From positions 5,828,001 through 5,892,000 of the forward strand of contig OZ059895.1 in the NCBI GenBank assembly GCA_964057225.1: 64,000 nt of DNA. The letters run 5' to 3'. Under the pieces are notes generated by a model, which made no database searches, was not told where the DNA came from, and was given only the letters and a program-made list of their open reading frames with translations. Of the stretch, positions 16,308-50,991 are shown one piece after another. The translations under genes and the position numbers were made by a program. The stretch comes from Auanema rhodensis. Taxonomy: Eukaryota; Animalia; Nematoda. The stretch's first letter is position 1; each line of letters starts with the position of its first letter.

Positions 16308-17102
16308 CTATTAATTTAAAAAAATACACATATAATATATAAACAATATAATGAAAAAACAATAAATTTGAAAAACTGTTTGTATGAAATGGAAATACGA
16401 AAATCATCGAAATGAAACGGAGAAGAGGAGATGAATGATGATTTGATGTGCGTATAGCAAATGAAAAGAGAGAAAAAACTTATAAAAACAAAAGAAAATT
16501 AAATAAAATTAAGTTAAATAATAAAAATTCAAAATACTTATTAATGAATTAAAAATCATTTGTGTTAAAATATTTCAAATAAAAACTGAAGAAATGAGAA
16601 ACACTAAGGGAACTTCTTCAAAATGACAAAAAAAAGAGTGAATAGGATGAAGAGAATGTAGAGAAAGTCAACATACAAATTTAAAACAAATATTTATCTG
16701 TAAGGATTCTTCAAGGCTTTTAAAATATTTTTTTTAAAGTCTGAAAAATGTTCTTTTTCTAAGGGAATTCAATATCTCTGACTGATTTTGATGTAAGACA
16801 TCATATGGTACTACTCTAACAACATTCCTCATTCAATGACTTCACTTTAACTTTCTCAAATAGATGATTTCTTAAAAAAATATTGAAAAACGAATATACA
16901 AATACTATGGAAAACAATAAATTTGAGAGAATTGTATTCTATATAAGACGTTTGGTTAAGCCTTCTTGTGCTTTTCAATGTCAAAAGACTGTTGGTCAAG
17001 TATCTTCAGTGCTTATACACACAAATCTTGAACGGTATGCACTTCAGTCAGTTCGATAGTTGCAACTTTCACTATAAAAATAGCATTTTTTGGTATAAAA
17101 AT

Positions 17103-17673
17103 ATATTTTTTAAAGATTTTTCTGATTGATAACAATATACTAAAATTCAAAAATGTTTCATTTTTTTAAATTTTTTAATAAAAAATTCAAAAAAAAAAAA
17201 GTTTTACATGTAGGAAAGAATGAGTTTTATTAAAAACAAAAAAAATAATATTTTATGGAAATAATTCAATTTTATAAGTTTTAGTTGATTTTGTATTCAT
17301 CTATTGAGTTATTCTATTCGTTCGCTACGAAATCGCAACAGTTGTTGCGAATATGAAGTTCTGTATTACATCAGAAAGCACTATGACATGTCCGTTGTGG
17401 TCTAGTGGTTAGGATTTATGGCTCTCACCCATAAGGCCGGGGTTCGATTCCCCGCAACGGAATAACTTTTCAAATTTTTTTTGTGCTTCAAACTCAACCG
17501 AAATACGGAAAAAAGAATATACATTTTCCAAATAATCATCTATCTGCCTACCTTAAAGAATTTAAAACCATTGATGAAGACAGAAAGATGACGAGTCATA
17601 ACACTAGTTGATGATACCGAGGCATTTGTCTGAGTTGGTTCTCTTTCCTCAACCAAACCAAGTTTTTGCTTAT
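17103..17673 (+). repeat. Left arm of 571-bp long inverted repeat (partner 49653-50223)
   Basis: Reverse complement of 49653-50223 with only 2 mismatches seen by eye; even the A12/T12 homopolymer matches. Contains the tRNA-Glu gene. Confidence 0.95.
17391..17462 (+). tRNA. tRNA-Glu(CTC)
   Basis: Acceptor stem TCCGTTG/CAACGGA, A box TGGTCTAGTGG, anticodon arm TATGG-CT-CTC-AC-CCATA, B box GGTTCGATTCC, downstream T-runs as Pol III terminator. Confidence 0.97.
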
Positions 17674-19653
17674 AAGCTCTGCTATTAGGATTTGAATGGT
17701 TTTGCTTAGAAACTTTATTCGAATGATTTAAATGGTTTTGCTTAGAAGCTCTGTTCTTTTGGCTTGAATAACGTTAAAAATATTTCTAGAAAAGCTCGGA
17801 AGACCGAGGTTCGGATCCCTTCAATGAAATATGAGTTTCGAAGTGTTTTGTGGTTCAAACTCAACCGAAATACGGAAAAAAGAATATACATTTTCCAAAT
17901 AATCATCTATCTGCCTACCTTAAAGAATTTAAAACCATTGATGAAGACAGAAAGATGACGAGTCATAACACTAGTTGATGATACCGAGGCATTTGTCTGA
18001 GTTGGTTCTCTTTCCTCAACCTAACCAAGTTTTTGCTTATAAGCTCTCCTATTTGGATTTTAATGATTTTGCTTAGAAACTTTATTCGAATGATTTGAAT
18101 GGTTTTGCTTAGAAGCTCTGTTCGTTTGGCTTGAATAACGTTAAAAATATTTCTAGAAAAGCTCGGAAGACCGAGGTTCGGATCCCTTCAATGAGATATG
18201 AGTTTCGAAGTGTTTTGTGGTTCAAACTCAACCGAAATACGGAAAAAAGAATATACATTTTCCAAATAATCATCTATCTGCCTACCTTAAAGAATTTAAA
18301 ACCATTGATGAAGACAGAAAGATGACGAGTCATAACACTAGTTGATGATACCGAGGCATTTGTCTGAGTTGGTTCTCTTTCCTCAACCTAACCAAGTTTT
18401 TGCTTATAAGCTCTCCTATTTGGATTTTAATGATTTTGCTTAGAAACTTTATTCGAATGATTTGAATGGTTTTGCTTAGAAGCTCTGTTCGTTTGGCTTG
18501 AATAACGTTAAAAATATTTCTAGAAAAGCTCGGAAGACCGAGGTTCGGATCCCTTCAATGAGATATGAGTTTCGAAGTGTTTTGTGCTTCAACTCAACCG
18601 AAATACGGAAAAAAGAATATACATTTTCCAAATAATCATCTATCTGCCTACCTTAAAGAATTTAAAACCATTGATGAAGACAGAAAGATGACGAGTCATA
18701 ACACTAGTTGATGATACCGAGGCATTTGTCTGAGTTGGTTCTCTTTCCTCAACCTAACCAAGTTTTTGCTTATAAGCTCTCCTATTTGGATTTTAATGAT
18801 TTTGCTTAGAAACTTTATTCGAATGATTTGAATGGTTTTGCTTAGAAGCTCTGTTCGTTTGGCTTGAATAACGTTAAAAATATTTCTAGAAAAGCTCGGA
18901 AGACCGAGGTTCGGATCCCTTCAATGAGATATGAGTTTCGAAGTGTTTTGTGCTTCAACTCAACCGAAATACGGAAAAAAGAATATACATTTTCCAAATA
19001 ATCATCTATCTGCCTACCTTAAAGAATTTAAAACCATTGATGAAGACAGAAAGATGACGAGTCATAACACTAGTTGATGATACCGAGGCATTTGTCTGAG
19101 TTGGTTCTCTTTCCTCAACCTAACCAAGTTTTTGCTTATAAGCTCTCCTATTTGGATTTTAATGATTTTGCTTAGAAACTTTATTCGAATGATTTGAATG
19201 GTTTTGCTTAGAAGCTCTGTTCGTTTGGCTTGAATAACGTTAAAAATATTTCTAGAAAAGCTCGGAAGACCGAGGTTCGGATCCCTTCAATGAGATATGA
19301 GTTTCGAAGTGTTTTGTGGTTCAAACTCAACCGAAATACGGAAAAAAGAATATACATTTTCCAAATAATCATCTATCTGCCTACCTTAAAGAATTTAAAA
19401 CCATCGATGAAGACAGAAAGATGACGAGTCATAACACTAGTTGATGATACCGAGGCATTTGTCTGAGTTGGTTCTCTTTCCTCAACCTAACCAAGTTTTT
19501 GCTTATAAGCTTTGCTATTTGGATTTGAATGATTTTGCTTAGAAACTTTATTCGAATGATTTGAATGGTTTTGCTTAGAAGCTCTGTTCGTTTGGCTTGA
19601 ATAACGTTAAAAATATTTCTAGAAAAGCTCGGAAGACCGTAGGTTCGCGTCCC
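17483..19653 (+). repeat. 367-bp tandem repeat, ~5.9 copies
   Basis: Unit starts at 17483, 17850, 18217, 18584, 18950, 19316 (two units are 366 bp). Internal 36-bp sub-repeat TTTTGCTTA(T/G)AA at 17664/17700/17736. B-box-like GGTTCGGATCCC once per unit. Confidence 0.97.
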
Positions 19654-19677
19654 AAAATTTATCTAGAAAATTTTCTG

Positions 19678-19704
19678 TTGCCGCACCCATATCAGATACG
19701 GCAA
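19678..19704 (+). promoter_or_regulatory. Candidate snRNA proximal sequence element (PSE)
   Basis: TTGCCGCACCCATATCAGATACGGCAA at -62 to -36 of U1, the expected PSE position; loosely resembles the bipartite nematode PSE as recalled. Confidence 0.45.
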
Positions 19705-19739
19705 TGAAATTAGTATGCCCAAGCAGTGATTCTACCATT

Positions 19740-19900
19740 AAACTTACCTGGCTGGGGGTTGTCCACGATCAACAAGGCGGACTCCCTACGAAGAGGCCTG
19801 ATCATTGCACTTTAGATTGGGCTGACCTGTATGGCAATCTCGAGTTGAGATTCGCCAACAGCTAAATTTTTGCGTTTGGGGACGCGTTCGCGCGTCCCTT
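19740..19900 (+). ncRNA. U1 snRNA (possibly a variant)
   Basis: 5' AAACTTACCTGG splice-site recognition end; SL1 loop GATCAACAAG; SL2 loop ATTGCAC (U1A site); SL3 GGCAATCTCGAGTTGAGATTCGCC; Sm site AATTTTTG; SL4 GGGACGCGTTCGCGCGTCCC. Confidence 0.95.
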
Positions 19901-20019
19901 ACAAGAGTATGGGCCGAAGAATTTTCACTCAACGAAAACTAAGTTTCTATTTCTTCTATCCGATTTTAGAAAAATTCGCTAAGAAGGAGTCTCGAGATTT
20001 TTTATTAAAATAGCAGATC

Positions 20020-20233
20020 ATAAGCAAAAACTTGGTTAGGTTGAGGAAAAAGAACCAACTCAGACAAATGCCTCGGTATCATCAACTAGTGTTATGACTC
20101 GTCATCTTTCTGTCTTCATCAATGGTTTTAAATTCTTTAAGGTAGGCAGATAGATGATTATTTGGAAAATGTATATTCTTTTTTCCGTATTTCGGTTGAG
20201 TTTGAACCACAAAACACTTCGAAACTCATATCT
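20020..20233 (-). repeat. Inverted 214-bp fragment of the 367-bp unit
   Basis: Near-identical reverse complement of 19293-19506; abuts the first 200-bp monomer directly. Confidence 0.93.
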
Positions 20234-23200
20234 ACCTTTTTTCCGGAAACAGGAGAATTCCTGGTGAAATCTCACTAAGAATTTCAGAATCTACACATCT
20301 GAATACCTAACCTTAAAGTATTTTTATTTGATTTTAGTTGATGATCTTTAAGTAAATCGAACATTCACCGGGCACAACGTGCCTACAGCCTGAACGTTTT
20401 TGTGAACAAAGCATGTGGATGGGGTCCAGATAAACCTTTTTTCCGGAAACAGGAGAGATCCTGGTGAAATCTCACTAAGAATTTCAGAATCTACACATCT
20501 GAATACCTAACCTTAACGTATTTTTATTTGATTTTAGTTGATGATCTTTAAGTAAATCGAACATTCACCGGGCACAACGTGCCTACAGCCTGAACGTTTT
20601 TGTGAACAAAGCATGTGGATGGGCTCCAGATAAACCTTTTTTCCGGAAACAGGAGAATTCCTGGTGAAATCTCACTAAGAATTTCAGAATCTACACATCT
20701 GAATACCTAACCTTAAAGTATTTTTATTTGATTTTAGTTGATGATCTTTAAGTAAATCGAACATTCACCGGGCACAACGTGCCTACAGCCTGAACGTTTT
20801 TGTGAACAAAGCATGTGGATGGGCTCCAGATAAACCTTTTTTCCGGAAACAGGAGAATTCCTGGTGAAATCTCACTAAGAATTTCAGAATCTACACATCT
20901 GAATACCTAACCTTAAAGTATTTTTATTTGATTTTAGTTGATGATCTTTAAGTAAATCGAACATTCACCGGGCACAACGTGCCTACAGCCTGAACGTTTT
21001 TGTGAACAAAGCATGTGAATGGGGTCCAGATAAACCTTTTTTCCGGAAACAGGAGAATTCCTGATGAAATCTCACTGAGAATTTCAGAATCTACACATCT
21101 GAATACCTAATCTTAAAGTATTTTTATTTGATTTTAGTTGATGATCTTTAAGTAAATCGAACATTCACCGGGCACAACGTGCCTACAGCCTGAACGTTTT
21201 TGTGAACAAAGCATGTGAATGGGGTCCAGATAAACCTTTTTTCCGGAAACAGGAGAATTCCTGGTGAAATCTCACTAAGAATTTCAGAATCTACACATCT
21301 GAATACCTAACCTTAAAGTATTTTTATTTGATTTTAGTTGATGATCTTTAAGTAAATCGAACATTCACCGGGCACAACGTGCCTACAGCCTGAACGTTTT
21401 TGTGAACAAAGCATGTGAATGGGGTCCAGATAAACCTTTTTTCCGGAAACAGGAGAATTCCTGGTGAAATCTCACTAAGAATTTCAGAATCTACACATCT
21501 GAATACCTAATCTTAAAGTATTTTTATTTGATTTTAGTTGATGATCTTTAAGTAAATCGAACATTCACCGGGCACAACGTGCCTACAGCCTGAACGTTTT
21601 TGTGAACAAAGCATGTGAATGGGGTCCAGATAAACCTTTTTTCCGGAAACAGGAGAATTCCTGGTGAAATCTCACTAAGAATTTCAGAATCTACACATCT
21701 GAATACCTAACCTTAAAGTATTTTTATTTGATTTTAGTTGATGATCTTTAAGTAAATCGAACATTCACCGGGCACAACGTGCCTACAGCCTGAACGTTTT
21801 TGTGAACAAAGCATGTGAATGGGGTCCAGATAAACCTTTTTTCCGGAAACAGGAGAATTCCTGGTGAAATCTCACTAAGAATTTCAGAATCTACACATCT
21901 GAATACCTAACCTTAAAGTATTTTTATTTGATTTTAGTTGATGATCTTTAAGTAAATCGAACATTCACCGGGCACAACGTGCCTACAGCCTGAACGTTTT
22001 TGTGAACAAAGCATGTGAATGGGGTCCAGATAAACCTTTTTTCCGGAAACAGGAGAATTCCTGGTGAAATCTCACTAAGAATTTCAGAATCTACACATCT
22101 GAATACCTAACCTTAAAGTATTTTTATTTGATTTTAGTTGATGATCTTTAAGTAAATCGAACATTCACCGGGCACAACGTGCCTACAGCCTGAACGTTTT
22201 TGTGAACAAAGCATGTGAATGGGGTCCAGATAAACCTTTTTTCCGGAAACAGGAGAATTCCTGGTGAAATCTCACTAAGAATTTCAGAATCTACACATCT
22301 GAATACCTAACCTTAAAGTATTTTTATTTGATTTTAGTTGATGATCTTTAAGTAAATCGAACATTCACCGGGCACAACGTGCCTACAGCCTGAACGTTTT
22401 TGTGAACAAAGCATGTGAATGGGGTCCAGATAAACCTTTTTTCCGGAAACAGGAGAATTCCTGGTGAAATCTCACTAAGAATTTCAGAATCTACACATCT
22501 GAATACCTAACCTTAAAGTATTTTTATTTGATTTTAGTTGATGATCTTTAAGTAAATCGAACATTCACCGGGCACAACGTGCCTACAGCCTGAACGTTTT
22601 TGTGAACAAAGCATGTGAATGGGGTCCAGATAAACCTTTTTTCCGGAAACAGGAGAATTCCTGATGAAATCTCACTGAGAATTTCAGAATCTACACATCT
22701 GAATACCTAATCTTAAAGTATTTTTATTTGATTTTAGTTGATGATCTTTAAGTAAATCGAACATTCACCGGGCACAACGTGCCTACAGTCTGAACGTTTT
22801 TGTGAACAAAGCATGTGAATGGGGTCCAGATAAACCTTTTTTCCGGAAACAGGAGAATTCCTGGTGAAATCTCACTAAGAATTTCAGAATCTACACATCT
22901 GAATACCTAATCTTAAAGTATTTTTATTTGATTTTAGTTGATGATCTTTAAGTAAATCGAACATTCACCGGGCACAACGTGCCTACAGTCTGAACGTTTT
23001 TGTGAACAAAGCATGTGAATGGGGTCCAGATAAACCTTTTTTCCGGAAACAGGAGAATTCCTGGTGAAATCTCACTAAGAATTTCAGAATCTACACATCT
23101 GAATACCTAATCTTAAAGTATTTTTATTTGATTTTAGTTGATGATCTTTAAGTAAATCGAACATTCACCGGGCACAACGTGCCTACAGCCTTAACGTTTT

Positions 23201-26200
23201 TGTGAACAAAGCATGTGAATGGGGTCCAGATAAACCTTTTTTCCGGAAACAGGAGAATTCCTGGTGAAATCTCACTAAGAATTTCAGAATCTACACATCT
23301 GAATACCTAACCTTAAAGTATTTTTATTTGATTTTAGTTGATGATCTTTAAGTAAATCGAACATTCACCGGGCACAACGTGCCTACAGCCTGAACGTTTT
23401 TGTGAACAAAGCATGTGAATGGGGTCCAGATAAACCTTTTTTCCGGAAACAGGAGAATTCCTGGTGAAATCTCACTAAGAATTTCAGAATCTACACATCT
23501 GAATACCTAACCTTAAAGTATTTTTATTTGATTTTAGTTGATGATCTTTAAGTAAATCGAACATTCACCGGGCACAACGTGCCTACAGCCTGAACGTTTT
23601 TGTGAACAAAGCATGTGAATGGGGTCCAGATAAACCTTTTTTCCGGAAACAGGAGAATTCCTGGTTAAATCTCACTAAGAATTTCAGAATCTACACATCT
23701 GAATACCTAACCTTAAAGTATTTTTATTTGATTTTAGTTGATGATCTTTAAGTAAATCGAACATTCACCGGGCACAACGTGCCTACAGCCTGAACGTTTT
23801 TGTGAACAAAGCATGTGAATGGGGTCCAGATAAACCTTTTTTCCGGAAACAGGAGAATTCCTGGTGAAATCTCACTAAGAATTTCAGAATCTACACATCT
23901 GAATACCTAACCTTAAAGTATTTTTATTTGATTTTAGTTGATGATCTTTAAGTAAATCGAACATTCACCGGGCACAACGTGCCTACAGCCTTAACGTTTT
24001 TGTGAACAAAGCATGTGAATGGGGTCCAGATAAACCTTTTTTCCGGAAACAGGAGAATTCCTGGTGAAATCTCACTAAGAATTTCAGAATCTACACATCT
24101 GAATACCTAACCTTAAAGTATTTTTATTTGATTTTAGTTGATGATCTTTAAGTAAATCGAACATTCACCGGGCACAACGTGCCTACAGCCTTAACGTTTT
24201 TGTGAACAAAGCATGTGAATGGGGTCCAGATAAACCTTTTTTCCGGAAACAGGAGAATTCCTGGTGAAATCTCACTAAGAATTTCAGAATCTACACATCT
24301 GAATACCTAACCTTAAAGTATTTTTATTTGATTTTAGTTGATGATCTTTAAGTAAATCGAACATTCACCGGGCACAACGTGCCTACAGCCTTAACGTTTT
24401 TGTGAACAAAGCATGTGAATGGGGTCCAGATAAACCTTTTTTCCGGAAACAGGAGAATTCCTGGTGAAATCTCACTAAGAATTTCAGAATCTACACATCT
24501 GAATACCTAACCTTAAAGTATTTTTTTTTGATTTTAGTTGATGATCTTTAAGTAAATCGAACATTCACCGGGCACAACGTGCCTACAGCCTGAACGTTTT
24601 TGTGAACAAAGCATGTGAATGGGGTCCAGATAAACCTTTTTTCCGGAAACAGGAGAATTCCTGGTGAAATCTCACTAAGAATTTCAGAATCTACACATCT
24701 GAATACCTAACCTTAAAGTATTTTTATTTGATTTTAGTTGATGATCTTTAAGTAAATCGAACATTCACCGGGCACAACGTGCCTACAGCCTTAACGTTTT
24801 TGTGAACAAAGCATGTGAATGGGGTCCAGATAAACCTTTTTTCCGGAAACAGGAGAATTCCTGGTGAAATCTCACTAAGAATTTCAGAATCTACACATCT
24901 GAATACCTAACCTTAAAGTATTTTTATTTGATTTTAGTTGATGATCTTTAAGTAAATCGAACATTCACCGGGCACAACGTGCCTACAGCCTGAACGTTTT
25001 TGTGAACAAAGCATGTGAATGGGGTCCAGATAAACCTTTTTTCCGGAAACAGGAGAATTCCTGGTGAAATCTCACTAAGAATTTCAGAATCTACACATCT
25101 GAATACCTAACCTTAAAGTATTTTTATTTGATTTTAGTTGATGATCTTTAAGTAAATCGAACATTCACCGGGCACAACGTGCCTACAGCCTGAACGTTTT
25201 TGTGAACAAAGCATGTGAATGGGGTCCAGATAAACCTTTTTTCCGGAAACAGGAGAATTCCTGGTGAAATCTCACTAAGAATTTCAGAATCTACACATCT
25301 GAATACCCAACCTTAAAGTATTTTTATTTGATTTTAGTTGATGATCTTTAAGTAAATCGAACATTCACCGGGCACAACGTGCCTACAGTCTGAACGTTTT
25401 TGTGAACAAAGCATGTGGATGGGGTCCAGATAAACCTTTTTTCCGGAAACAGGAGAGATCCTGGTGAAATCTCACTAAGAATTTCAGAATCTACACATCT
25501 GAATACCTAACCTTAAAGTATTTTTATTTGATTTTAGTTGATGATCTTTAAGTAAATCGAACATTCACCGGGCACAACGTGCCTACAGCCTGAACGTTTT
25601 TGTGAACAAAGCATGTGGATGGGGTCCAGATAAACCTTTTTTCCGGAAACAGGAGAGATCTTGGTGTAATCTCACTAAGAATTTCAGAATCTACACAACT
25701 GAATACCTAACCTTAAAGTATTTTTATTTGATTTTAGTTGATGATCTTTAAGTAAATCGAACATTCACCGGGCACAACGTGCCTACAGTCTGAACGTTTT
25801 TGTGAACAAAGCATGTGAATGGGGTCCAGATAAACCTTTTTTCCGGAAACAGGAGAATTCCTGGTGAAATCTCACTAAGAATTTCAGAATCTACACATCT
25901 GAATACCTAACCTTAAAGTATTTTTATTTGATTTTAGTTGATGATCTTTAAGTAAATCGAACATTCACCGGGCACAACGTGCCTACAGCCTGAACGTTTT
26001 TGTGAACAAAGCATGTGGATGGGGTCCAGATAAACCTTTTTTCCGGAAACAGGAGAGATCTTGGTGTAATCTCACTAAGAATTTCAGAATCTACACAACT
26101 GAATACCTAACCTTAAAGTATTTTTATTTGATTTTAGTTGATGATCTTTAAGTAAATCGAACATTCACCGGGCACAACGTGCCTACAGTCTGAACGTTTT

Positions 26201-29200
26201 TGTGAACAAAGCATGTGAATGGGGTCCAGATAAACCTTTTTTCCGGAAACAGGAGAATTCCTGGTGAAATCTCACTAAGAATTTCAGAATCTACACATCT
26301 GAATACCTAACCTTAAAGTATTTTTATTTGATTTTAGTTGATGATCTTTAAGTAAATCGAACATTCACCGGGCACAACGTGCCTACAGCCTGAACGTTTT
26401 TGTGAACAAAGCATGTGAATGGGGTCCAGATAAACCTTTTTTCCGGAAACAGGAGAATTCCTGGTGAAATCTCACTAAGAATTTCAGAATCTACACATCT
26501 GAATACCTAACCTTAAAGTATTTTTATTTGATTTTAGTTGATGATCTTTAAGTAAATCGAACATTCACCGGGCACAACGTGCCTACAGCCTGAACGTTTT
26601 TGTGAACAAAGCATGTGGATGGGGTCCAGATAAACCTTTTTTCCGGAAACAGGAGAGATCTTGGTGAAATCTCACTAAGAATTTCAGAATCTACACAACT
26701 GAATACCTAACCTTAAAGTATTTTTATTTGATTTTAGTTGATGATCTTTAAGTAAATCGAACATTCACCGGGCACAACGTGCCTACAGTCTGAACGTTTT
26801 TGTGAACAAAGCATGTGAATGGGGTCCAGATAAACCTTTTTTCCGGAAACAGGAGAATTCCTGGTGAAATCTCACTAAGAATTTCAGAATCTACACATCT
26901 GAATACCTAACCTTAAAGTATTTTTATTTGATTTTAGTTGATGATCTTTAAGTAAATCGAACATTCACCGGGCACAACGTGCCTACAGTCTGAACGTTTT
27001 TGTGAACAAAGCATGTGAATGGGGTCCAGATAAACCTTTTTTCCGGAAACAGGAGAATTCCTGGTGAAATCTCACTAAGAATTTCAGAATCTACACATCT
27101 GAATACCTAACCTTAAAGTATTTTTATTTGATTTTAGTTGATGATCTTTAAGTAAATCGAACATTCACCGGGCACAACGTGCCTACAGCCTGAACGTTTT
27201 TGTGAACAAAGCATGTGGATGGGGTCCAGATAAACCTTTTTTCCGGAAACAGGAGAATTCCTGGTGAAATCTCACTAAGAATTTCAGAATCTACACATCT
27301 GAATACCTAACCTTAAAGTATTTTTATTTGATTTTAGTTGATGATCTTTAAGTAAATCGAACATTCACCGGGCACAACGTGCCTACAGCCTGAACGTTTT
27401 TGTGAACAAAGCATGTGGATGGGGTCCAGATAAACCTTTTTTCCGGAAACAGGAGAGATCTTGGTGAAATCTCACTAAGAATTTCAGAATCTACACATCT
27501 GAATACCTAACCTTAAAGTATTTTTATTTGATTTTAGTTGATGATCTTTAAGTAAATCGAACATTCACCGGGCACAACGTGCCTACAGCCTGAACGTTTT
27601 TGTGAACAAAGCATGTGAATGGGGTCCAGATAAACCTTTTTTCCGGAAACAGGAGAATTCCTGGTGAAATCTCACTAAGAATTTCAGAATCTACACATCT
27701 GAATACCTAACCTTAAAGTATTTTTATTTGATTTTAGTTGATGATCTTTAAGTAAATCGAACATTCACCGGGCACAACGTGCCTACAGTCTGAACGTTTT
27801 TGTGAACAAAGCATGTGGATGGGGTCCAGATAAACCTTTTTTCCGGAAACAGGAGAATTCCTGGTGAAATCTCACTAAGAATTTCAGAATCTACACATCT
27901 GAATACCTAACCTTAAAGTATTTTTATTTGATTTTAGTTGATGATCTTTAAGTAAATCGAACATTCACCGGGCACAACGTGCCTACAGTCTGAACGTTTT
28001 TGTGAACAAAGCATGTGGATGGGGTCCAGATAAACCTTTTTTCCGGAAACAGGAGAATTCCTGGTGAAATCTCACTAAGAATTTCAGAATCTACACATCT
28101 GAATACCTAACCTTAAAGTATTTTTATTTGATTTTAGTTGATGATCTTTAAGTAAATCGAACATTCACCGGGCACAACGTGCCTACAGCCTGAACGTTTT
28201 TGTGAACAAAGCATGTGAATGGGGTCCAGATAAACCTTTTTTCCGGAAACAGGAGAATTCCTGGTGAAATCTCACTAAGAATTTCAGAATCTACACATCT
28301 GAATACCTAACCTTAAAGTATTTTTATTTGATTTTAGTTGATGATCTTTAAGTAAATCGAACATTCACCGGGCACAACGTGCCTACAGTCTGAACGTTTT
28401 TGTGAACAAAGCATGTGGATGGGGTCCAGATAAACCTTTTTTCCGGAAACAGGAGAGATCCTGGTGAAATCTCACTAAGAATTTCAGAATCTACACATCT
28501 GAATACCTAACCTTAAAGTATTTTTATTTGATTTTAGTTGATGATCTTTAAGTAAATCGAACATTCACCGGGCACAACGTGCCTACAGCCTGAACGTTTT
28601 TGTGAACAAAGCATGTGAATGGGGTCCAGATAAACCTTTTTTCCGGAAACAGGAGAATTCCTGGTGAAATCTCACTAAGAATTTCAGAATCTACACATCT
28701 GAATACCTAACCTTAACGTATTTTTATTTGATTTTAGTTGATGATCTTTAAGTAAATCGAACATTCACCGGGCACAACGTGCCTACAGCCTGAACGTTTT
28801 TGTGAACAAAGCATGTGAATGGGGTCCAGATAAACCTTTTTTCCGGAAACAGGAGAATTCCTGGTGAAATCTCACTAAGAATTTCAGAATCTACACATCT
28901 GAATACCTAATCTTAAAGTATTTTTATTTGATTTTAGTTGATGATCTTTAAGTAAATCGAACATTCACCGGGCACAACGTGCCTACAGCCTGAACGTTTT
29001 TGTGAACAAAGCATGTGAATGGGGTCCAGATAAACCTTTTTTCCGGAAACAGGAGAATTCCTGGTGAAATCTCACTAAGAATTTCAGAATCTACACATCT
29101 GAATACCTAACCTTAAAGTATTTTTATTTGATTTTAGTTGATGATCTTTAAGTAAATCGAACATTCACCGGGCACAACGTGCCTACAGCCTGAACGTTTT

Positions 29201-38200: not shown

Positions 38201-41200
38201 TGTGAACAAAGCATGTGGATGGGGTCCAGATAAACCTTTTTTCCGGAAACAGGAGAATTCCTGGTGAAATCTCACTAAGAATTTCAGAATCTACACATCT
38301 GAATACCTAACCTTAAAGTATTTTTATTTGATTTTAGTTGATGATCTTTAAGTAAATCGAACATTCACCGGGCACAACGTGCCTACAGTCTGAACGTTTT
38401 TGTGAACAAAGCATGTGGATGGGGTCCAGATAAACCTTTTTTCCGGAAACAGGAGAGATCCTGGTGAAATCTCACTAAGAATTTCAGAATCTACACATCT
38501 GAATACCTAACCTTAACGAATTTTTGTTTGATTTTAGTTGATGATCTTTAAGTAAATCGAACATTCACCGGGCACAACGTGCCTACAGCCTGAACGTTTT
38601 TGTGAACAAAGCATGTGGATGGGGTCCAGATAAACCTTTTTTCCGGAAACAGGAGAGATCCTGGTGAAATCTCACTAAGAATTTCAGAATCTACACATCT
38701 GAATACCTAACCTTAAAGTATTTTTATTTGATTTTAGTTGATGATCTTTAAGTAAATCGAACATTCACCGGGCACAACGTGCCTACAGTCTGAACGTTTT
38801 TGTGAACAAAGCATGTGGATGGGGTCCAGATAAACCTTTTTTCCGGAAACAGGAGAGATCCTGGTGAAATCTCACTAAGAATTTCAGAATCTACACATCT
38901 GAATACCTAACCTTAAAGTATTTTTATTTGATTTTAGTTGATGATCTTTAAGTAAATCGAACATTCACCGGGCACAACGTGCCTACAGCCTGAACGTTTT
39001 TGTGAACAAAGCATGTGGATGGGGTCCAGATAAACCTTTTTTTCCGGAAACAGGAGAGATCCTGGTGAAATCTCACTAAGAATTTCAGAATCTACACATC
39101 TGAATACCTAACCTTAACGTATTTTTATTTGATTTTAGTTGATGATCTTTAAGTAAATCGAACATTCACCGGGCACAACGTGCCTACAGTCTGAACGTTT
39201 TTGTGAACAAAGCATGTGGATGGGGTCCAGATAAACCTTTTTTCCGGAAACAGGAGAGATCCTGGTGAAATCTCACTAAGAATTTCAGAATCTACACATC
39301 TGAATACCTAACCTTAACGTATTTTTATTTGATTTTAGTTGATGATCTTTAAGTAAATCGAACATTCACCGGGCACAACGTGCCTACAGTCTGAACGTTT
39401 TTGTGAACAAAGCATGTGGATGGGGTCCAGATAAACCTTTTTTTCCGGAAACAGGAGAGATCCTGGTGAAATCTCACTAAGAATTTCAGAATCTACACAT
39501 CTGAATACCTAACCTTAACGTATTTTTATTTGATTTTAGTTGATGATCTTTAAGTAAATCGAACATTCACCGGGCACAACGTGCCTACAGTCTGAACGTT
39601 TTTGTGAACAAAGCATGTGGATGGGGTCCAGATAAACCTTTTTTCCGGAAACAGGAGAATTCCTGGTGAAATCTCACTAAGAATTTCAGAATCTACACAT
39701 CTGAATACCTAACCTTAAAGTATTTTTATTTGATTTTAGTTGATGATCTTTAAGTAAATCGAACATTCACCGGGCACAACGTGCCTACAGTCTGAACGTT
39801 TTTGTGAACAAAGCATGTGGATGGGGTCCAGATAAACCTTTTTTCCGGAAACAGGAGAGATCCTGGTGAAATCTCACTAAGAATTTCAGAATCTACACAT
39901 CTGAATACCTAACCTTAAAGTATTTTTATTTGATTTTAGTTGATGATCTTTAAGTAAATCGAACATTCACCGGGCACAACGTGCCTACAGTCTGAACGTT
40001 TTTGTGAACAAAGCATGTGGATGGGGTCCAGATAAACCTTTTTTCCGGAAACAGGAGAGATCCTGATGAATTCTCACTAAGAATTTCAGAATCTACACAT
40101 CTGAATACCTAACCTTAACGTATTTTTATTTGATTTTAGTTGATGATCTTTAAGTAAATCGAACATTCACCGGGCACAACGTGCCTACAGTCTGAACGTT
40201 TTTGTGAACAAAGCATGTGGATGGGGTCCAGATAAACCTTTTTTCCGGAAACAGGAGAGATCCTGATGAATTCTCACTAAGAATTTCAGAATCTACACAT
40301 CTGAATACCTAATCTTAAAGTATTTTTATTTGATTTTAGTTGATGATCTTTAAGTAAATCGAACATTCACCGGGCACAACGTGCCTACAGTCTGAACGTT
40401 TTTGTGAACAAAGCATGTGGATGGGGTCCAGATAAACCTTTTTTCCGGAAACAGGAGAATTCCTGGTGAAATCTCACTAAGAATTTCAGAATCTACACAT
40501 CTGAATACCTAACCTTAAAGTATTTTTATTTGATTTTAGTTGATGATCTTTAAGTAAATCGAACATTCACCGGGCACAACGTGCCTACAGCCTGAACGTT
40601 TTTGTGAACAAAGCATGTGGATGGGGTCCAGATAAACCTTTTTTCCGGAAACAGGAGAATTCCTGGTGAAATCTCACTAAGAATTTCAGAATCTACACAT
40701 CTGAATACCTAACCTTAAAGTATTTTTATTTGATTTTAGTTGATGATCTTTAAGTAAATCGAACATTCACCGGGCACAACGTGCCTACAGCCTGAACGTT
40801 TTTGTGAACAAAGCATGTGGATGGGGTCCAGATAAACCTTTTTTTCCGGAAACAGGAGAGATCCTGGTGAAATCTCACTAAGAATTTCAGAATCTACACA
40901 TCTGAATACCTAACCTTAACGTATTTTTATTTGATTTTAGTTGATGATCTTTAAGTAAATCGAACATTCACCGGGCACAACGTGCCTACAGTCTGAACGT
41001 TTTTGTGAACAAAGCATGTGGATGGGGTCCAGATAAACCTTTTTTCCGGAAACAGGAGAGATCCTGATGAATTCTCACTAAGAATTTCAGAATCTACACA
41101 TCTGAATACCTAATCTTAAAGTATTTTTATTTGATTTTAGTTGATGATCTTTAAGTAAATCGAACATTCACCGGGCACAACGTGCCTACAGCCTGAACGT

Positions 41201-44200
41201 TTTTGTGAACAAAGCATGTGGATGGGGTCCAGATAAACCTTTTTTCCGGAAACAGGAGAGATCCTGATGAAATCTCACTAAGAATTTCAGAATCTACACA
41301 TCTGAATACCTAACCTTAAAGTATTTTTATTTGATTTTAGTTGATGATCTTTAAGTAAATCGAACATTCACCGGGCACAACGTGCCTACAGCCTGAACGT
41401 TTTTGTGAACAAAGCATGTGGATGGGGTCCAGATAAACCTTTTTTCCGGAAACAGGAGAATTCCTGGTGAAATCTCACGAAGAATTTCAGAATCTACACA
41501 TCTGAATACCTAACCTTAACGTATTTTTATTTGATTTTAGTTGATGATCTTTAAGTAAATCGAACATTCACCGGGCACAACGTGCCTACAGTCTGAACGT
41601 TTTTGTGAACAAAGCATGTGGATGGGGTCCAGATAAACCTTTTTTCCGGAAACAGGAGAGATCCTGATGAATTCTCACTAAGAATTTCAGAATCTACACA
41701 TCTGAATACCTAATCTTAAAGTATTTTTATTTGATTTTAGTTGATGATCTTTAAGTAAATCGAACATTCACCGGGCACAACGTGCCTACAGCCTGAACGT
41801 TTTTGTGAACAAAGCATGTGGATGGGGTCCAGATAAACCTTTTTTCCGGAAACAGGAGAGATCCTGATGAAATCTCACTAAGAATTTCAGAATCTACACA
41901 TCTGAATACCTAACCTTAAAGTATTTTTATTTGATTTTAGTTGATGATCTTTAAGTAAATCGAACATTCACCGGGCACAACGTGCCTACAGCCTGAACGT
42001 TTTTGTGAACAAAGCATGTGGATGGGGTCCAGATAAACCTTTTTTCCGGAAACAGGAGAATTCCTGGTGAAATCTCACTAAGAATTTCAGAATCTACACA
42101 TCTGAATACCTAACCTTAACGTATTTTTATTTGATTTTAGTTGATGATCTTTAAGTAAATCGAACATTCACCGGGCACAACGTGCCTACAGTCTGAACGT
42201 TTTTGTGAACAAAGCATGTGGATGGGGTCCAGATAAACCTTTTTTCCGGAAACAGGAGAATTCCTGGTGAAATCTCACTAAGAATTTCAGAATCTACACA
42301 TCTGAATACCTAACCTTAAAGTATTTTTATTTGATTTTAGTTGATGATCTTTAAGTAAATCGAACATTCACCGGGCACAACGTGCCTACAGTCTGAACGT
42401 TTTTGTGAACAAAGCATGTGGATGGGGTCCAGATAAACCTTTTTTTCCGGAAACAGGAGAGATCCTGGTGAAATCTCACTAAGAATTTCAGAATCTACAC
42501 ATCTGAATACCTAACCTTAAAGTATTTTTATTTGATTTTAGTTGATGATCTTTAAGTAAATCGAACATTCACCGGGCACAACGTGCCTACAGTCTGAACG
42601 TTTTTGTGAACAAAGCATGTGGATGGGGTCCAGATAAACCTTTTTTTCCGGAAACAGGAGAGATCCTGGTGAAATCTCACTAAGAATTTCAGAATCTACA
42701 CATCTGAATACCTAACCTTAAAGTATTTTTATTTGATTTTAGTTGATGATCTTTAAGTAAATCGAACATTCACCGGGCACAACGTGCCTACAGCCTGAAC
42801 GTTTTTGTGAACAAAGCATGTGGATGGGGTCCAGATAAACCTTTTTTTCCGGAAACAGGAGAGATCCTGGTGAAATCTCACTAAGAATTTCAGAATCTAC
42901 ACATCTGAATACCTAACCTTAAAGTATTTTTATTTGATTTTAGTTGATGATCTTTAAGTAAATCGAACATTCACCGGGCACAACGTGCCTACAGTCTGAA
43001 CGTTTTTGTGAACAAAGCATGTGGATGGGGTCCAGATAAACCTTTTTTCCGGAAACAGGAGAGATCCTGGTGAAATCTCACTAAGAATTTCAGAATCTAC
43101 ACATCTGAATACCTAACCTTAAAGTATTTTTATTTGATTTTAGTTGATGATCTTTAAGTAAATCGAACATTCACCGGGCACAACGTGCCTACAGCCTGAA
43201 CGTTTTTGTGAACAAAGCATGTGGATGGGGTCCAGATAAACCTTTTTTTCCGGAAACAGGAGAGATCCTGGTGAAATCTCACTAAGAATTTCAGAATCTA
43301 CACATCTGAATACCTAACCTTAACGTATTTTTATTTGATTTTAGTTGATGATCTTTAAGTAAATCGAACATTCACCGGGCACAACGTGCCTACAGTCTGA
43401 ACGTTTTTGTGAACAAAGCATGTGGATGGGGTCCAGATAAACCTTTTTTCCGGAAACAGGAGAGATCCTGATGAATTCTCACTAAGAATTTCAGAATCTA
43501 CACATCTGAATACCTAATCTTAAAGTATTTTTATTTGATTTTAGTTGATGATCTTTAAGTAAATCGAACATTCACCGGGCACAACGTGCCTACAGCCTGA
43601 ACGTTTTTGTGAACAAAGCATGTGGATGGGGTCCAGATAAACCTTTTTTCCGGAAACAGGAGAGATCCTGATGAAATCTCACTAAGAATTTCAGAATCTA
43701 CACATCTGAATACCTAACCTTAAAGTATTTTTATTTGATTTTAGTTGATGATCTTTAAGTAAATCGAACATTCACCGGGCACAACGTGCCTACAGCCTGA
43801 ACGTTTTTGTGAACAAAGCATGTGGATGGGGTCCAGATAAACCTTTTTTCCGGAAACAGGAGAATTCCTGGTGAAATCTCACGAAGAATTTCAGAATCTA
43901 CACATCTGAATACCTAACCTTAACGAATTTTTATTTGATTTTAGTTGATGATCTTTAAGTAAATCGAACATTCACCGGGCACAACGTGCCTACAGCCTGA
44001 ACGTTTTTGTGAACAAAGCATGTGGATGGGCTCCAGATAAACCTTTTTTCCGGAAACAGGAGAATTCCTGGTGAAATCTCACGAAGAATTTCAGAATCTA
44101 CACATCTGAATACCTAACCTTAACGAATTTTTATTTGATTTTAGTTGATGATCTTTAAGTAAATCGAACATTCACCGGGCACAACGTGCCTACAGCCTGA

Positions 44201-47200
44201 ACGTTTTTGTGAACAAAGCATGTGGATGGGGTCCAGATAAACCTTTTTTCCGGAAACAGGAGAATTCCTGGTGAAATCTCACTAAGAATTTCAGAATCTA
44301 CACATCTGAATACCTAACCTTAAAGTATTTTTATTTGATTTTAGTTGATGATCTTTAAGTAAATCGAACATTCACCGGGCACAACGTGCCTACAGCCTGA
44401 ACGTTTTTGTGAACAAAGCATGTGGATGGGCTCCAGATAAACCTTTTTTCCGGAAACAGGAGAATTCCTGGTGAAATCTCACTAAGAATTTCAGAATCTA
44501 CACATCTGAATACCTAACGTTAAAGTATTTTTATTTGATTTTAGTTGATGATCTTTAAGTAAATCGAACATTCACCGGGCACAACGTGCCTACAGTCTGA
44601 ACGTTTTTGTGAACAAAGCATGTGGATGGGGTCCAGATAAACCTTTTTTCCGGAAACAGGAGAATTCCTGGTGAAATCTCACTAAGAATTTCAGAATCTA
44701 CACATCTGAATACCTAACGTTAAAGTATTTTTATTTGATTTTAGTTGATGATCTTTAAGTAAATCGAACATTCACCGGGCACAACGTGCCTACAGTCTGA
44801 ACGTTTTTGTGAACAAAGCATGTGGATGGGGTCCAGATAAACCTTTTTTCCGGAAACAGGAGAATTCCTGGTGAAATCTCACTAAGAATTTCAGAATCTA
44901 CACATCTGAATACCTAACCTTAAAGTATTTTTATTTGATTTTAGTTGATGATCTTTAAGTAAATCGAACATTCACCGGGCACAACGTGCCTACAGCCTGA
45001 ACGTTTTTGTGAACAAAGCATGTGGATGGGGTCCAGATAAACCTTTTTTCCGGAAACAGGAGAGATCCTGGTGAATTCTCACTAAGAATTTCAGAATCTA
45101 CACATCTGAATACCTAACCTTAACGAATTTTTATTTGATTTTAGTTGATGATCTTTAAGTAAATCGAACATTCACCGGGCACAACGTGCCTACAGCCTGA
45201 ACGTTTTTGTGAACAAAGCATGTGGATGGGGTCCAGATAAACCTTTTTTCCGGAAACAGGAGAGATCCTGGTGAAATCTCACTAAGAATTTCAGAATCTA
45301 CACATCTGAATACCTAACCTTAAAGTATTTTTATTTGATTTTAGTTGATGATCTTTAAGTAAATCGAACATTCACCGGGCACAACGTGCCTACAGTCTGA
45401 ACGTTTTTGTGAACAAAGCATGTGGATGGGGTCCAGATAAACCTTTTTTCCGGAAACAGGAGAATTCCTGGTGAAATCTCACTAAGAATTTCAGAATCTA
45501 CACATCTGAATACCTAACCTTAACGAATTTTTATTTGATTTTAGTTGATGATCTTTAAGTAAATCGAACATTCACCGGGCACAACGTGCCTACAGCCTGA
45601 ACGTTTTTGTGAACAAAGCATGTGGATGGGGTCCAGATAAACCTTTTTTCCGGAAACAGGAGAGATCCTGGTGAATTCTCACTAAGAATTTCAGAATCTA
45701 CACATCTGAATACCTAACCTTAAAGTATTTTTATTTGATTTTAGTTGATGATCTTTAAGTAAATCGAACATTCACCGGGCACAACGTGCCTACAGCCTGA
45801 ACGTTTTTGTGAACAAAGCATGTGGATGGGGTCCAGATAAACCTTTTTTCCGGAAACAGGAGAGATCCTGGTGAATTCTCACTAAGAATTTCAGAATCTA
45901 CACATCTGAATACCTAACCTTAAAGTATTTTTATTTGATTTTAGTTGATGATCTTTAAGTAAATCGAACATTCACCGGGCACAACGTGCCTACAGCCTGA
46001 ACGTTTTTGTGAACAAAGCATGTGGATGGGGTCCAGATAAACCTTTTTTCCGGAAACAGGAGAGATCCTGGTGAATTCTCACTAAGAATTTCAGAATCTA
46101 CACATCTGAATACCTAACCTTAACGAATTTTTATTTGATTTTAGTTGATGATCTTTAAGTAAATCGAACATTCACCGGGCACAACGTGCCTACAGCCTGA
46201 ACGTTTTTGTGAACAAAGCATGTGGATGGGGTCCAGATAAACCTTTTTTCCGGAAACAGGAGAGATCCTGGTGAAATCTCACTAAGAATTTCAGAATCTA
46301 CACATCTGAATACCTAACCTTAAAGTATTTTTATTTGATTTTAGTTGATGATCTTTAAGTAAATCGAACATTCACCGGGCACAACGTGCCTACAGTCTGA
46401 ACGTTTTTGTGAACAAAGCATGTGGATGGGGTCCAGATAAACCTTTTTTCCGGAAACAGGAGAGATCCTGGTGAAATCTCACTAAGAATTTCAGAATCTA
46501 CACATCTGAATACCTAACCTTAAAGTATTTTTATTTGATTTTAGTTGATGATCTTTAAGTAAATCGAACATTCACCGGGCACAACGTGCCTACAGCCTGA
46601 ACGTTTTTGTGAACAAAGCATGTGGATGGGGTCCAGATAAACCTTTTTTCCGGAAACAGGAGAATTCCTGGTGAAATCTCACGAAGAATTTCAGAATCTA
46701 CACATCTGAATACCTAACCTTAACGAATTTTTATTTGATTTTAGTTGATGATCTTTAAGTAAATCGAACATTCACCGGGCACAACGTGCCTACAGCCTGA
46801 ACGTTTTTGTGAACAAAGCATGTGGATGGGCTCCAGATAAACCTTTTTTCCGGAAACAGGAGAATTCCTGGTGAAATCTCACTAAGAATTTCAGAATCTA
46901 CACATCTGAATACCTAACCTTAAAGTATTTTTATTTGATTTTAGTTGATGATCTTTAAGTAAATCGAACATTCACCGGGCACAACGTGCCTACAGCCTGA
47001 ACGTTTTTGTGAACAAAGCATGTGGATGGGGTCCAGATAAACCTTTTTTCCGGAAACAGGAGAGATCCTGGTGAAATCTCACTAAGAATTTCAGAATCTA
47101 CACATCTGAATACTTAACCTTAAAGTATTTTTATTTGATTTTAGTTGATGATCTTTAAGTAAATCGAACATTCACCGGGCACAACGTGCCTACAGTCTGA

Positions 47201-49505
47201 ACGTTTTTGTGAACAAAGCATGTGGATGGGGTCCAGATAAACCTTTTTTCCGGAAACAGGAGAGATCCTGGTGAAATCTCACTAAGAATTTCAGAATCTA
47301 CACATCTGAATACCTAACCTTAAAGTATTTTTATTTGATTTTAGTTGATGATCTTTAAGTAAATCGAACATTCACCGGGCACAACGTGCCTACAGCCTGA
47401 ACGTTTTTGTGAACAAAGCATGTGGATGGGGTCCAGATAAACCTTTTTTCCGGAAACAGGAGAATTCCTGGTGAAATCTCACTAAGAATTTCAGAATCTA
47501 CACATCTGAATACCTAACCTTAAAGTATTTTTATTTGATTTTAGTTGATGATCTTTAAGTAAATCGAACATTCACCGGGCACAACGTGCCTACAGCCTGA
47601 ACGTTTTTGTGAACAAAGCATGTGGATGGGGTCCAGATAAACCTTTTTTCCGGAAACAGGAGAGATCCTGGTGAATTCTCACTAAGAATTTCAGAATCTA
47701 CACATCTGAATACCTAACCTTAAAGTATTTTTATTTGATTTTAGTTGATGATCTTTAAGTAAATCGAACATTCACCGGGCACAACGTGCCTACAGCCTTA
47801 ACGTTTTTGTGAACAAAGCATGTGAATGGGGTCCAGATAAACCTTTTTTCCGGAAACAGGAGAATTCCTGGTGAAATCTCACTAAGAATTTCAGAATCTA
47901 CACATCTGAATACCTAACCTTAAAGTATTTTTATTTGATTTTAGTTGATGATCTTTAAGTAAATCGAACATTCACCGGGCACAACGTGCCTACAGCCTGA
48001 ACGTTTTTGTGAACAAAGCATGTGGATGGGGTCCAGATAAACCTTTTTTCCGGAAACAGGAGAATTCCTGGTGAAATCTCACGAAGAATTTCAGAATCTA
48101 CACATCTGAATACCTAACCTTAACGAATTTTTATTTGATTTTAGTTGATGATCTTTAAGTAAATCGAACATTCACCGGGCACAACGTGCCTACAGCCTGA
48201 ACGTTTTTGTGAACAAAGCATGTGGATGGGCTCCAGATAAACCTTTTTTCCGGAAACAGGAGAATTCCTGGTGAAATCTCACTAAGAATTTCAGAATCTA
48301 CACATCTGAATACCTAACCTTAAAGTATTTTTATTTGATTTTAGTTGATGATCTTTAAGTAAATCGAACATTCACCGGGCACAACGTGCCTACAGCCTGA
48401 ACGTTTTTGTGAACAAAGCATGTGGATGGGGTCCAGATAAACCTTTTTTCCGGAAACAGGAGAGATCCTGGTGAAATCTCACTAAGAATTTCAGAATCTA
48501 CACATCTGAATACTTAACCTTAAAGTATTTTTATTTGATTTTAGTTGATGATCTTTAAGTAAATCGAACATTCACCGGGCACAACGTGCCTACAGTCTGA
48601 ACGTTTTTGTGAACAAAGCATGTGGATGGGGTCCAGATAAACCTTTTTTCCGGAAACAGGAGAGATCCTGGTGAAATCTCACTAAGAATTTCAGAATCTA
48701 CACATCTGAATACCTAACCTTAAAGTATTTTTATTTGATTTTAGTTGATGATCTTTAAGTAAATCGAACATTCACCGGGCACAACGTGCCTACAGCCTGA
48801 ACGTTTTTGTGAACAAAGCATGTGGATGGGGTCCAGATAAACCTTTTTTCCGGAAACAGGAGAATTCCTGGTGAAATCTCACTAAGAATTTCAGAATCTA
48901 CACATCTGAATACCTAACCTTAAAGTATTTTTATTTGATTTTAGTTGATGATCTTTAAGTAAATCGAACATTCACCGGGCACAACGTGCCTACAGCCTGA
49001 ACGTTTTTGTGAACAAAGCATGTGGATGGGGTCCAGATAAACCTTTTTTCCGGAAACAGGAGAGATCCTGGTGAAATCTCACTAAGAATTTCAGAATCTA
49101 CACATCTGAATACTTAACCTTAAAGTATTTTTATTTGATTTTAGTTGATGATCTTTAAGTAAATCGAACATTCACCGGGCACAACGTGCCTACAGCCTGA
49201 ACGTTTTTGTGAACAAAGCATGTGGATGGGGTCCAGATAAACCTTTTTTCCGGAAACAGGAGAGATCCTGGTGAATTCTCACTAAGAATTTCAGAATCTA
49301 CACATCTGAATACCTAACCTTAACGAATTTTTATTTGATTTTAGTTGATGATCTTTAAGTAAATCGAACATTCACCGGGCACAACGTGCCTACAGCCTGA
49401 ACGTTTTTGTGAACAAAGCATGTGGATGGGGTCCAGATAAACCTTTTTTCCGGAAACAGGAGAATTCCTGGTGAAATCTCACTAAGAATTTCAGATTCTA
49501 CACAT
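20234..49505 (+). repeat. 200-bp satellite array: 146 full monomers plus a partial one (~29.3 kb)
   Basis: Monomer ACCTTTTTTCCGGAAACAGGAGAATTCCTGGTGAAATCTCAC...GGGGTCCAGATAA. First monomer starts at 20234 and last at 49441; the difference 29207 = 146x200 + 7 single-T insertions. Only a few substitutions per monomer and no ORF >=60 aa. Confidence 0.99.
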
Positions 49506-49652
49506 TCAGATCAGATTTATGATCTTTGAGAAAAACGGAGATTCACTAGGAGTATGGGCTGAAGAATTATTGAATTATTCTTCGCGATTTTTGAAAAATT
49601 AGAAAGCGCTAAGAAAGAGATTTTCGAGATTTGTTTTATTAAACAGCAGATC

Positions 49653-50223
49653 ATAAGCAAAAACTTGGTTAGGTTGAGGAAAGAGAACCAACTCAGACAA
49701 ATGCCTCGGTATCATCAACTAGTGTTATGACTCGTCATCTTTCTGTCTTCATCAATGGTTTTAAATTCTTTAAGGTAGGCAGATAGATGATTATTTGGAA
49801 AATGTATATTCTTTTTTCCGTATTTCGGTTGAGTTTGAAGCACAAAAAAAATTTGAAAAGTTATTCCGTTGCGGGGAATCGAACCCCGGCCTTATGGGTG
49901 AGAGCCATAAATCCTAACCACTAGACCACAACGGACATGTCATAGTGCTTTCTGATGTAATACAGAACTTCATATTCGCAACAACTGTTGCGATTTCGTA
50001 GCGAACGAATAGAATAACTCAATAGATGAATACAAAATCAACTAAAACTTATAAAATTGAATTATTTCCATAAAATATTATTTTTTTTGTTTTTAATAAA
50101 ACTCATTCTTTCCTACATGTAAAACTTTTTTTTTTTTGAATTTTTTATTAAAAAATTTAAAAAAATGAAACATTTTTGAATTTTAGTATATTGTTATCAA
50201 TCAGAAATATCTTTAAAAAATAT
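49653..50223 (-). repeat. Right arm of 571-bp long inverted repeat (partner 17103-17673)
   Basis: Reverse complement of 17103-17673. Confidence 0.95.
49864..49935 (-). tRNA. tRNA-Glu(CTC)
   Basis: Exact reverse complement of 17391-17462, with the same terminator. Confidence 0.97.

Positions 50224-50987: not shown

Positions 50988-50991
<4 letters not shown>

Follow-up and report, generated by a model that had tools for sequence, protein, structure and literature searches.

Primate sex chromosomes contain palindromes whose gene-bearing arms, of 9 kb to 1.45 Mb, are kept identical by arm-to-arm gene conversion. The foldback (FB) elements of Drosophila have arms made of short tandem subrepeats, generate a 9-bp target duplication and are present in many copies. 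In fission yeast, the inverted repeats IR-L and IR-R lie at the silent mating-type region, and tRNA genes or IRC repeats form barriers at the centromeres; both barrier function and TFIIIC binding have been demonstrated for these elements. IRC repeats are mentioned in PMC3778242. The repeat arrays of the nematode Auanema rhodense contain tRNA, 5S and U2 genes together with satellites of 167-504 bp (bioRxiv 10.64898/2026.08.27.747507). Here we analyzed 64 kb of the genome of this species (A. rhodensis in GenBank assembly GCA_964057225.1, contig OZ059895.1, positions 5,828,001 to 5,892,000, forward strand; hereafter the window, with its first base as position 1). The window contains a block at 17103-50223, 33.1 kb long with its arms included, in which two inverted repeats, each with a tRNA-Glu gene, enclose small-RNA genes and satellite DNA. 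On balance, we favor the view that this block is a one-off, lineage-specific island, formed when DNA was inserted, amplified in tandem and recombined through its repeats.

A repeat search of the window placed the inverted arms at 17103-17678 and 49648-50223 (576 nt, 99% complementary, 31,969 nt apart), and blastn gave a match of 584 bp with 98.97% identity. Base-by-base alignment over 17103-17673 revealed two mismatches, at 17118 and 17655 (99.65% identity), and the match between the arms dissolves within ~13 bp past 17673. At their termini the arms consist of plain AT-rich sequence, and on the inner side they stop where a repeat termed B, shared with the 367-bp array, comes to its end. Both tRNA-Glu genes have canonical A and B boxes and terminators, with an intact B box (GGTTCGATTCC), and each sits 288 bp in from the outer border of the block and points inward. 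The block interior is not palindromic. The parts of the block, including genes similar to small nucleolar RNA (snoRNA) genes and a U1 small nuclear RNA (snRNA) gene, are as follows.

17103-17673, plus strand: left inverted arm, with 288 bp of AT-rich upstream sequence, tRNA-Glu and the ~200 bp B core with a snoRNA-like gene
17391-17462, plus strand: intact tRNA-Glu(CTC) gene (ARAGORN and Rfam, 65.3 bits), with T4 and T8 runs downstream
17479-19647, plus strand: 367-bp tandem array (Tandem Repeats Finder, TRF; 5.9 copies, 99%)
17546-17638, plus strand: C/D-box snoRNA-like gene of the U15 / SNOR75 / ceN23-1 type, the first of six in direct orientation
17913-18005, 18280-18372, 18646-18738, 19012-19104 and 19379-19471, plus strand: five further direct snoRNA-like copies
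19740-19900, plus strand: complete U1 snRNA gene (Rfam 109.2 bits, against a cut-off of 69.5)
19901-20014, plus strand: F, the 3′ flank of U1
20015-20233, minus strand: inverted B core with a snoRNA-like copy at 20055-20147, flanked by F and by the end of a 367-bp unit
20234-49546, plus strand: array of the 200-bp satellite, composed of 146 monomers and a partial one of 65 bp, with a decayed piece at its edge (~49515-49546)
49547-49641, plus strand: F′, a diverged direct copy of F that begins exactly at the expected end of a U1 gene
49653-50223, minus strand: right inverted arm, with a snoRNA-like copy at 49688-49780 and tRNA-Glu at 49864-49935
49864-49935, minus strand: intact tRNA-Glu(CTC) gene, identical to the left copy (ARAGORN and Rfam, 65.3 bits)

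A first-pass annotation of this DNA had described near-perfect inverted arms with about two mismatches, an intact tRNA-Glu gene in each arm and, enclosed by them, a 367-bp array, a U1 gene, an inverted 367-bp fragment and 146 monomers of 200 bp; all of these were found again here. It had seen no target-site duplication, and we likewise observed no direct repeat of at least 3 bp at the block flanks (...GGTATAAAAAT and TTCAAAGTTTT...), where a 2-bp TA duplication would be hidden in the repeat. Its statement that the block holds no transposase or other gene needs correction: no open reading frame (ORF) of at least 65 aa occurs within the block, but eight C/D-box snoRNA-like genes do. It overlooked these genes, the duplicated gene pair that makes up the arms and the mosaic of sequences around B.

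The block is built from the same sequence classes as the A. rhodense arrays, namely amplified small-RNA genes and a satellite of similar size, and lies in the same AT-rich genome. Those arrays, however, are megabase germline-restricted blocks with a 29-bp palindromic break motif at their borders, whereas here a 33-kb island lies among conserved genes, has no motif core and is bounded by inverted repeats. No description of such an island was found in the A. rhodense paper (bioRxiv 10.64898/2026.08.27.747507) or in literature searches. With the IR-L/IR-R domain of fission yeast the block has in common a repeat domain of tens of kb, located beside ordinary genes and between near-identical inverted repeats with RNA polymerase III (Pol III) promoter elements; it differs in being known from sequence alone, and in that its arms add a snoRNA-like gene and are a recent, species-specific duplicate. 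As in the primate palindromes, gene-bearing arms are more alike than older adjoining duplicates, are separated by a spacer and could act as an inversion substrate, but here the arms measure 0.57 kb, the spacer is mostly satellite and conversion is presumed.

The gene that recurs throughout the left part of the block has a C box (TGATGA), a D box (CTGA) and a short stem that closes both ends in the predicted fold. Of its eight copies in the block, six are direct and one is inverted, and the right arm holds the last. Its two guide blocks, GAUGACGAGUC and GAGGCAUUUGU, align to three families, Caenorhabditis ceN23-1, plant SNOR75 and the guide part of human SNORD15, so that the likeness to U15/SNORD15, SNOR75 and ceN23-1 (RF00067, RF02539, RF01623) extends over the C/D boxes, the end stem and both guide blocks. 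The scores remain under the Rfam cut-offs (ceN23-1, 32.4 against 40; SNOR75, 31.1 against 50; SNORD15, 22 against 75, a score for the guide part only; E = 1.7e-4 on 281 bases), and because of this we term the gene snoRNA-like. Apart from its sub-cut-off scores, the gene differs from these families in being tandemly arrayed and in lying 83 bp behind a tRNA gene. Since T runs occur between the tRNA and the snoRNA-like gene, the pair is not a dicistronic tRNA-snoRNA unit of the plant type. Each arm and each 367-bp unit carries a snoRNA-like gene; hence, as judged from its sequence, the "367-bp satellite" is a tandem array of snoRNA-like genes, and the arms represent one gene pair, tRNA-Glu and snoRNA-like, duplicated in inverted orientation.

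B (~200 bp) is the first part of every 367-bp unit and also a component of the arms, and its eight copies are 98.5-100% alike. The remainder of the unit, termed C, ends at its 3′ side in the decayed 3′ part of a tRNA, with the B-box-like sequence GGTTCGGATCC (10/11 B-box match). The sequences that flank B vary with its location: tRNA and C in the left arm, the unit end and C in the array, the unit end and F in the inverted fragment, and tRNA and F′ in the right arm. All four combinations are products expected from exchange between inverted B copies, which points to recombination as a process that has probably shaped the block.

The protein encoded by the glutathione S-transferase (GST) gene beside the block, assembled from exons spliced according to an RNA contig, has its best match in Auanema sp. 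JU1783 (86% identity), and the next in Caenorhabditis bovis (65%). In the JU1783 locus (L001, 21 kb) the synteny of the Frizzled and GST genes is kept, and blastn of L001 against the window revealed five collinear non-coding segments, one to the left of the block and the rest to its right (50336-59981). The features that define the site are the following.

15270-16309, minus strand: GST gene of the sigma class, shown to be expressed and spliced by an RNA contig with 4 introns, its 5′ end ~0.8 kb from the left arm
16979-17046: left-flank segment conserved with JU1783 (L001 9421-9484; blastn)
50336-50462: right-flank segment conserved with JU1783 (L001 9137-9278), followed by three collinear segments out to 59981

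In JU1783 the homologues of both flanks lie 139-143 bp apart. L001 contains no tRNA, Rfam match, tandem repeat, N or match to any piece of the block, and no relic of the block was found in the gap. On the left, homology with JU1783 extends weakly to ~17098, ~5 bp short of the arm (z = 4.3); to the right, homology is clear again from 50331, 108 bp past the arm, and of the stretch between only the first ~20 bp align, weakly (overall z = 0.3, not significant). About 90-110 bp beside the site differ between the species. The exons of the GST gene are only 72-74% identical between the window and JU1783 at the DNA level. From these alignments, one lineage has the whole 33.1-kb block with its arms, and the other lacks it. 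The first-pass annotation had taken the block for a discrete unit starting ~800 bp from the GST start, and had proposed a search for an empty site in other strains or sister species. JU1783 provides that site, with the flanks ~140 bp apart and nothing of the block between them, and so supports a discrete unit; the distance agrees with the 5′ end of the minus-strand spliced RNA contig, ~0.8 kb away.

Copy number was estimated from the assembler contigs of older bulk-DNA runs, which cover the left side of the block (window 15200-20900; 5,701 bases) and give a rough measure of depth. In run X1, flank contigs had a depth of 110-178, and the contig that spans the left junction (16966-17148) had a depth of 159, compared with 157-178 in the neighbouring flank. 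The arm contigs reached 241 and 282, ~1.8 times the flank. In run X10, which belongs to a separate study of low depth, a 634-nt contig (16760-17378) crosses the left junction without differences. Hence, for the left side, the junction is bridged by contigs from two independent studies. These data show that the left junction is real, that the outer arm occurs twice in the genome, both times at this locus, and that junction and arm are undepleted in bulk DNA. A contig that joins 17264 back to 15607 via ATTATA was also seen in X1 (depth 124) and in X10 (4.6); both of its ends are AT-rich and of low complexity, and it may represent a paralogous locus or a mapping artefact.

The repeated parts of the block behave differently. 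Relative to the flank, summed word depth was ~1,400-fold at both tRNA-Glu and U1 and 3,600-6,300-fold at the 200-mer, and the tRNA-Glu(CTC) contigs of X1 lead off into many different flanks, as those of a highly amplified tRNA gene. The tRNA-Glu, the U1 and the 200-mer are massively repeated elsewhere, and the local 200-bp array accounts for no more than a few percent of its family. These ratios fit the 19,554 tRNA genes and the arrayed non-coding RNA genes of A. rhodense (bioRxiv 10.64898/2026.08.27.747507). In the 2024 runs X9-X11, the unique flanks were present at 2-5-fold without differences, and tRNA-Glu at >17,000-fold. The ratio of satellite to flank is several-fold lower in X9-X11 than in X1; X9-X11 may be mixed samples or differ in tissue or stage composition.

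By TRF, the 200-bp array extends over 20234-49505 in a single orientation; 139 of its monomers are 200 bp long, and the other 7 are 201 bp. At its right edge, a decayed monomer (49515-49546) has 25/31 matches to the 200-mer (z = 5.6). Sequence variants form ordered blocks, in which, for example, monomers 55-63 recur as 64-72, and 133-139 as 140-146. Because its variants are ordered and contain block duplications, the array is taken as real and locally duplicating. The 200-mer has no Rfam match at E up to 10 and no unusual fold. A derivation of the 200-mer from the 367-bp unit, the U1 region or the arm was rejected, as local alignments were no better than shuffles (z ≤ 2.1). The monomer (20300-20345) does contain CCTAACCTTAAAG, followed by TGATGA ~29 nt later, and in B (17546-17575) CCTACCTTAAAG lies ahead of the snoRNA C box; the CCTACCTTAAAG element is part of the 5′ end of the ceN23-1 model. 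This hints that the 200-bp satellite may have descended from a snoRNA gene unit, with an alignment not above chance (z = 1.7) and without a Rfam match. The published A. rhodense probes AT-1 and XR-1, used for fluorescence in situ hybridization (FISH), do not correspond to the 200-bp family, having no match in the window at ≤3 mismatches; probes XT-1 and XT-2 were compared by eye only.

Nearly all of the U1 word depth in X1 carries other letters at 19772, 19781, 19785 and 19814, and an extra T after 19810. Since most of the depth differs at these four places, the local U1 is a minority variant, which implies that a large array of U1 genes lies elsewhere in the genome. The sequence TGTTGCCGCACCC, ~64 bp upstream of U1 (window 19660-19700), resembles the nematode snRNA proximal sequence element; if it is one, it would suggest that the U1 of the block has its own promoter. 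F and F′ differ by 8% (92% identity; 79 matches, 7 mismatches and 32 gap positions). F with an inverted B precedes the 200-bp array, and F′ with an inverted B comes after it. A 120-nt contig (19929-20048) that consists of F and the start of the inverted B, and that matches exactly, had a depth of 322, twice that of the flank, with one exact copy in the window.

A Frizzled-family receptor gene adjoins the GST gene in both Auanema species (window 9100-12500, plus strand; L001 13208-18623), and some non-coding segments of the Frizzled region, such as 6893-6937, are 85-94% conserved with JU1783. In the right flank (50800-63000) no clear exons were seen over more than 8 kb, and (GA/CT)n microsatellites are numerous. 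Short segments conserved with JU1783 also occur there, such as 56777-56841 at 91%; the conserved segments of the right flank may be regulatory DNA or belong to a long intron.

How could such a block have arisen? As a one-off lineage-specific island, it would have been gained at an intergenic site upstream of GST after the split from Auanema sp. JU1783. Repeated DNA (tRNA-Glu, U1 and the 200-bp satellite) and a snoRNA unit would have been captured at a break, the snoRNA unit would then have been tandemly amplified into the 367-bp array, and the 200-bp array would have expanded and been locally homogenized. Exchange between inverted copies of the ~200-bp B core would have been a third way in which the block was remodelled in place, and the likeness of the arms (99.6%) could result from a recent duplication or from arm-to-arm gene conversion. 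The arms would be substrates for inversion of the 32-kb interior, and any insulation by the two tRNA genes would be a by-product. The arms are more alike (99.65%) than F and F′ (92%), which fits an inverted segmental duplication homogenized by recombination or conversion. A gain is favored, since the divergence of the internal duplicates (0.35% and 8%) makes them much more recent than the separation of the species. Some points weigh against this reading. An empty site by itself carries no polarity, and a loss in JU1783 could also account for it; the read support covers the left junction; contig depth is a rough measure; and the doubled depth of the F contig suggests either a second U1-F unit elsewhere, which is a possible donor, or a collapsed duplication.

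An ancestral cluster that the JU1783 lineage lost by a clean deletion, perhaps through recombination or hairpin processing at the inverted arms, seems to us rather improbable. Long inverted repeats are known deletion hot spots, but the age of the internal duplicates argues against a loss, no relic of the block occurs in the ~90-110 bp next to the site, which differ between the species, and the block belongs to classes of sequence that are undergoing expansion in this genome. A giant non-autonomous element with terminal inverted repeats, foldback-like or composite, that transposed in with satellite and RNA genes would account for the near-perfect 571-bp arms, for a left insertion boundary that coincides with the arm end within ~5 bp and for the empty site in the sister species. 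Drosophila FB elements, and giant composite transposons flanked by them, are similar in their long inverted termini and in a large, variable interior that is partly repetitive and does not itself encode a transposase. Here, in contrast, there is no duplication, the outer arm is two-copy (by rough word depth) and the arms consist of host RNA genes (tRNA and snoRNA-like). The absence from the block of a target-site duplication of at least 3 bp, of a transposase and of any ORF of at least 65 aa, together with the plain AT-rich arm termini and inner ends that match the end of B, also argues against transposition. The foldback reading offered by the first-pass annotation, deprived of target duplication and coding capacity and with an outer arm that is merely two-copy, is thus very unlikely. 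An assembly artefact in the right arm or in the join of the array would be still harder to accept. Satellites are hard to assemble and the reads support only the left junction, but the arm depth is near two copies, and JU1783 synteny makes the right flank the true neighbor of the left one. In addition, the right arm has a private context (F′ and the decayed edge monomer) and its own variant at the equivalent of 17655, the 200-bp array has an ordered variant structure, and a fold-back read artefact is excluded by the non-palindromic interior.

The first-pass annotation had also considered a germline-limited segment, removed from the soma with the identical arms as its break signal. In nematode elimination, the broken ends are capped by telomeres and, as far as this process is known, the flanks are not rejoined. 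It is true that this species group removes satellite blocks rich in tRNA and snRNA arrays on a massive scale. Telomere addition in Oscheius and Auanema takes place at a palindromic break motif of 29 bp whose core reads GGC-N3(4)-GCC (PMC13060919; bioRxiv 10.64898/2026.08.27.747507); in A. rhodense this motif occurs at 28/28 internal sites, all of which edge megabase repeat blocks, and eliminated DNA has a coverage of 29-fold, compared with 236-fold for retained DNA (bioRxiv 10.64898/2026.08.27.747507). Our scan was for GGC-N3-GCC, GGC-N4-GCC, palindromic 29-mers with one mismatch and telomere repeats, and the published weight matrix was not used. It detected neither the GGC-N3/4-GCC core nor TTAGGC repeats in the block or its arms, and the sole core match in the 64-kb window, at 3933, is CTG-rich and not palindromic. 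Furthermore, the junction contig is at flank depth (159) and the arms are at ~1.8 times the flank, which is what two retained copies would give; the depth of the satellite itself cannot be judged, as the family lies mostly elsewhere. With no motif core, no telomere repeats and a retained depth of arm and junction, we regard a germline-limited segment as extremely improbable and retain the lineage-specific island as our preferred reading.

The first-pass annotation had further suggested a satellite chromatin domain insulated by tRNA genes, and the geometry fits it. Compatible with an island of this origin is the hypothesis that the two inward tRNA-Glu genes, together with the B-box-like remnants of the 367-bp units, act as paired TFIIIC barriers that confine satellite heterochromatin. 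Both tRNA genes are intact in their A and B boxes and terminators and lie at the two borders between satellite and ordinary DNA, the adjoining GST gene is expressed, and each 367-bp unit has a 10/11 B-box match. C. elegans TFIIIC sites are reported to cluster near heterochromatin boundaries (PMC6950938), and the eliminated A. rhodense repeats carry trimethylated lysine 9 of histone H3 (H3K9me3; bioRxiv 10.64898/2026.08.27.747507). On the other hand, the symmetry is more simply due to inverted duplication, on the left 2.8 kb of other genes lie between the tRNA and the satellite, and with ~1,400 further identical tRNA-Glu copies in the genome, closeness to one is unremarkable. We therefore consider paired barriers possible, though unlikely; if they exist, they would explain how a 29-kb satellite can lie 0.8 kb from an expressed gene. 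It is more doubtful still, and in our opinion improbable, that the arms serve as active boundaries, like IR-L/IR-R but in an animal, which would let germline-type satellite and RNA genes persist in gene-rich retained DNA. Were this so, islands capped by inverted repeats could be a route by which satellite seeds reach new chromosomal sites in Auanema.

Even if the block is a one-off rearrangement, it adds to the annotation two tRNA genes, a variant U1 and eight snoRNA-like genes that had not been annotated, and the island supplies the genome with extra tRNA-Glu, snoRNA-like and U1 genes. The difference between the germline and somatic genomes of Auanema is among the most extreme known, and the eliminated DNA consists of satellites and amplified tRNA and snRNA genes, the same ingredients as the island. 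The island would therefore be a small, datable case in which ingredients of the eliminated type are found in conserved gene-rich DNA, with an intact empty site in a sister species. At this locus it may be possible to ask how arrays are seeded at new sites, how gene-bearing inverted repeats keep their identity, and whether Pol III genes shield their neighbors from repeat chromatin.

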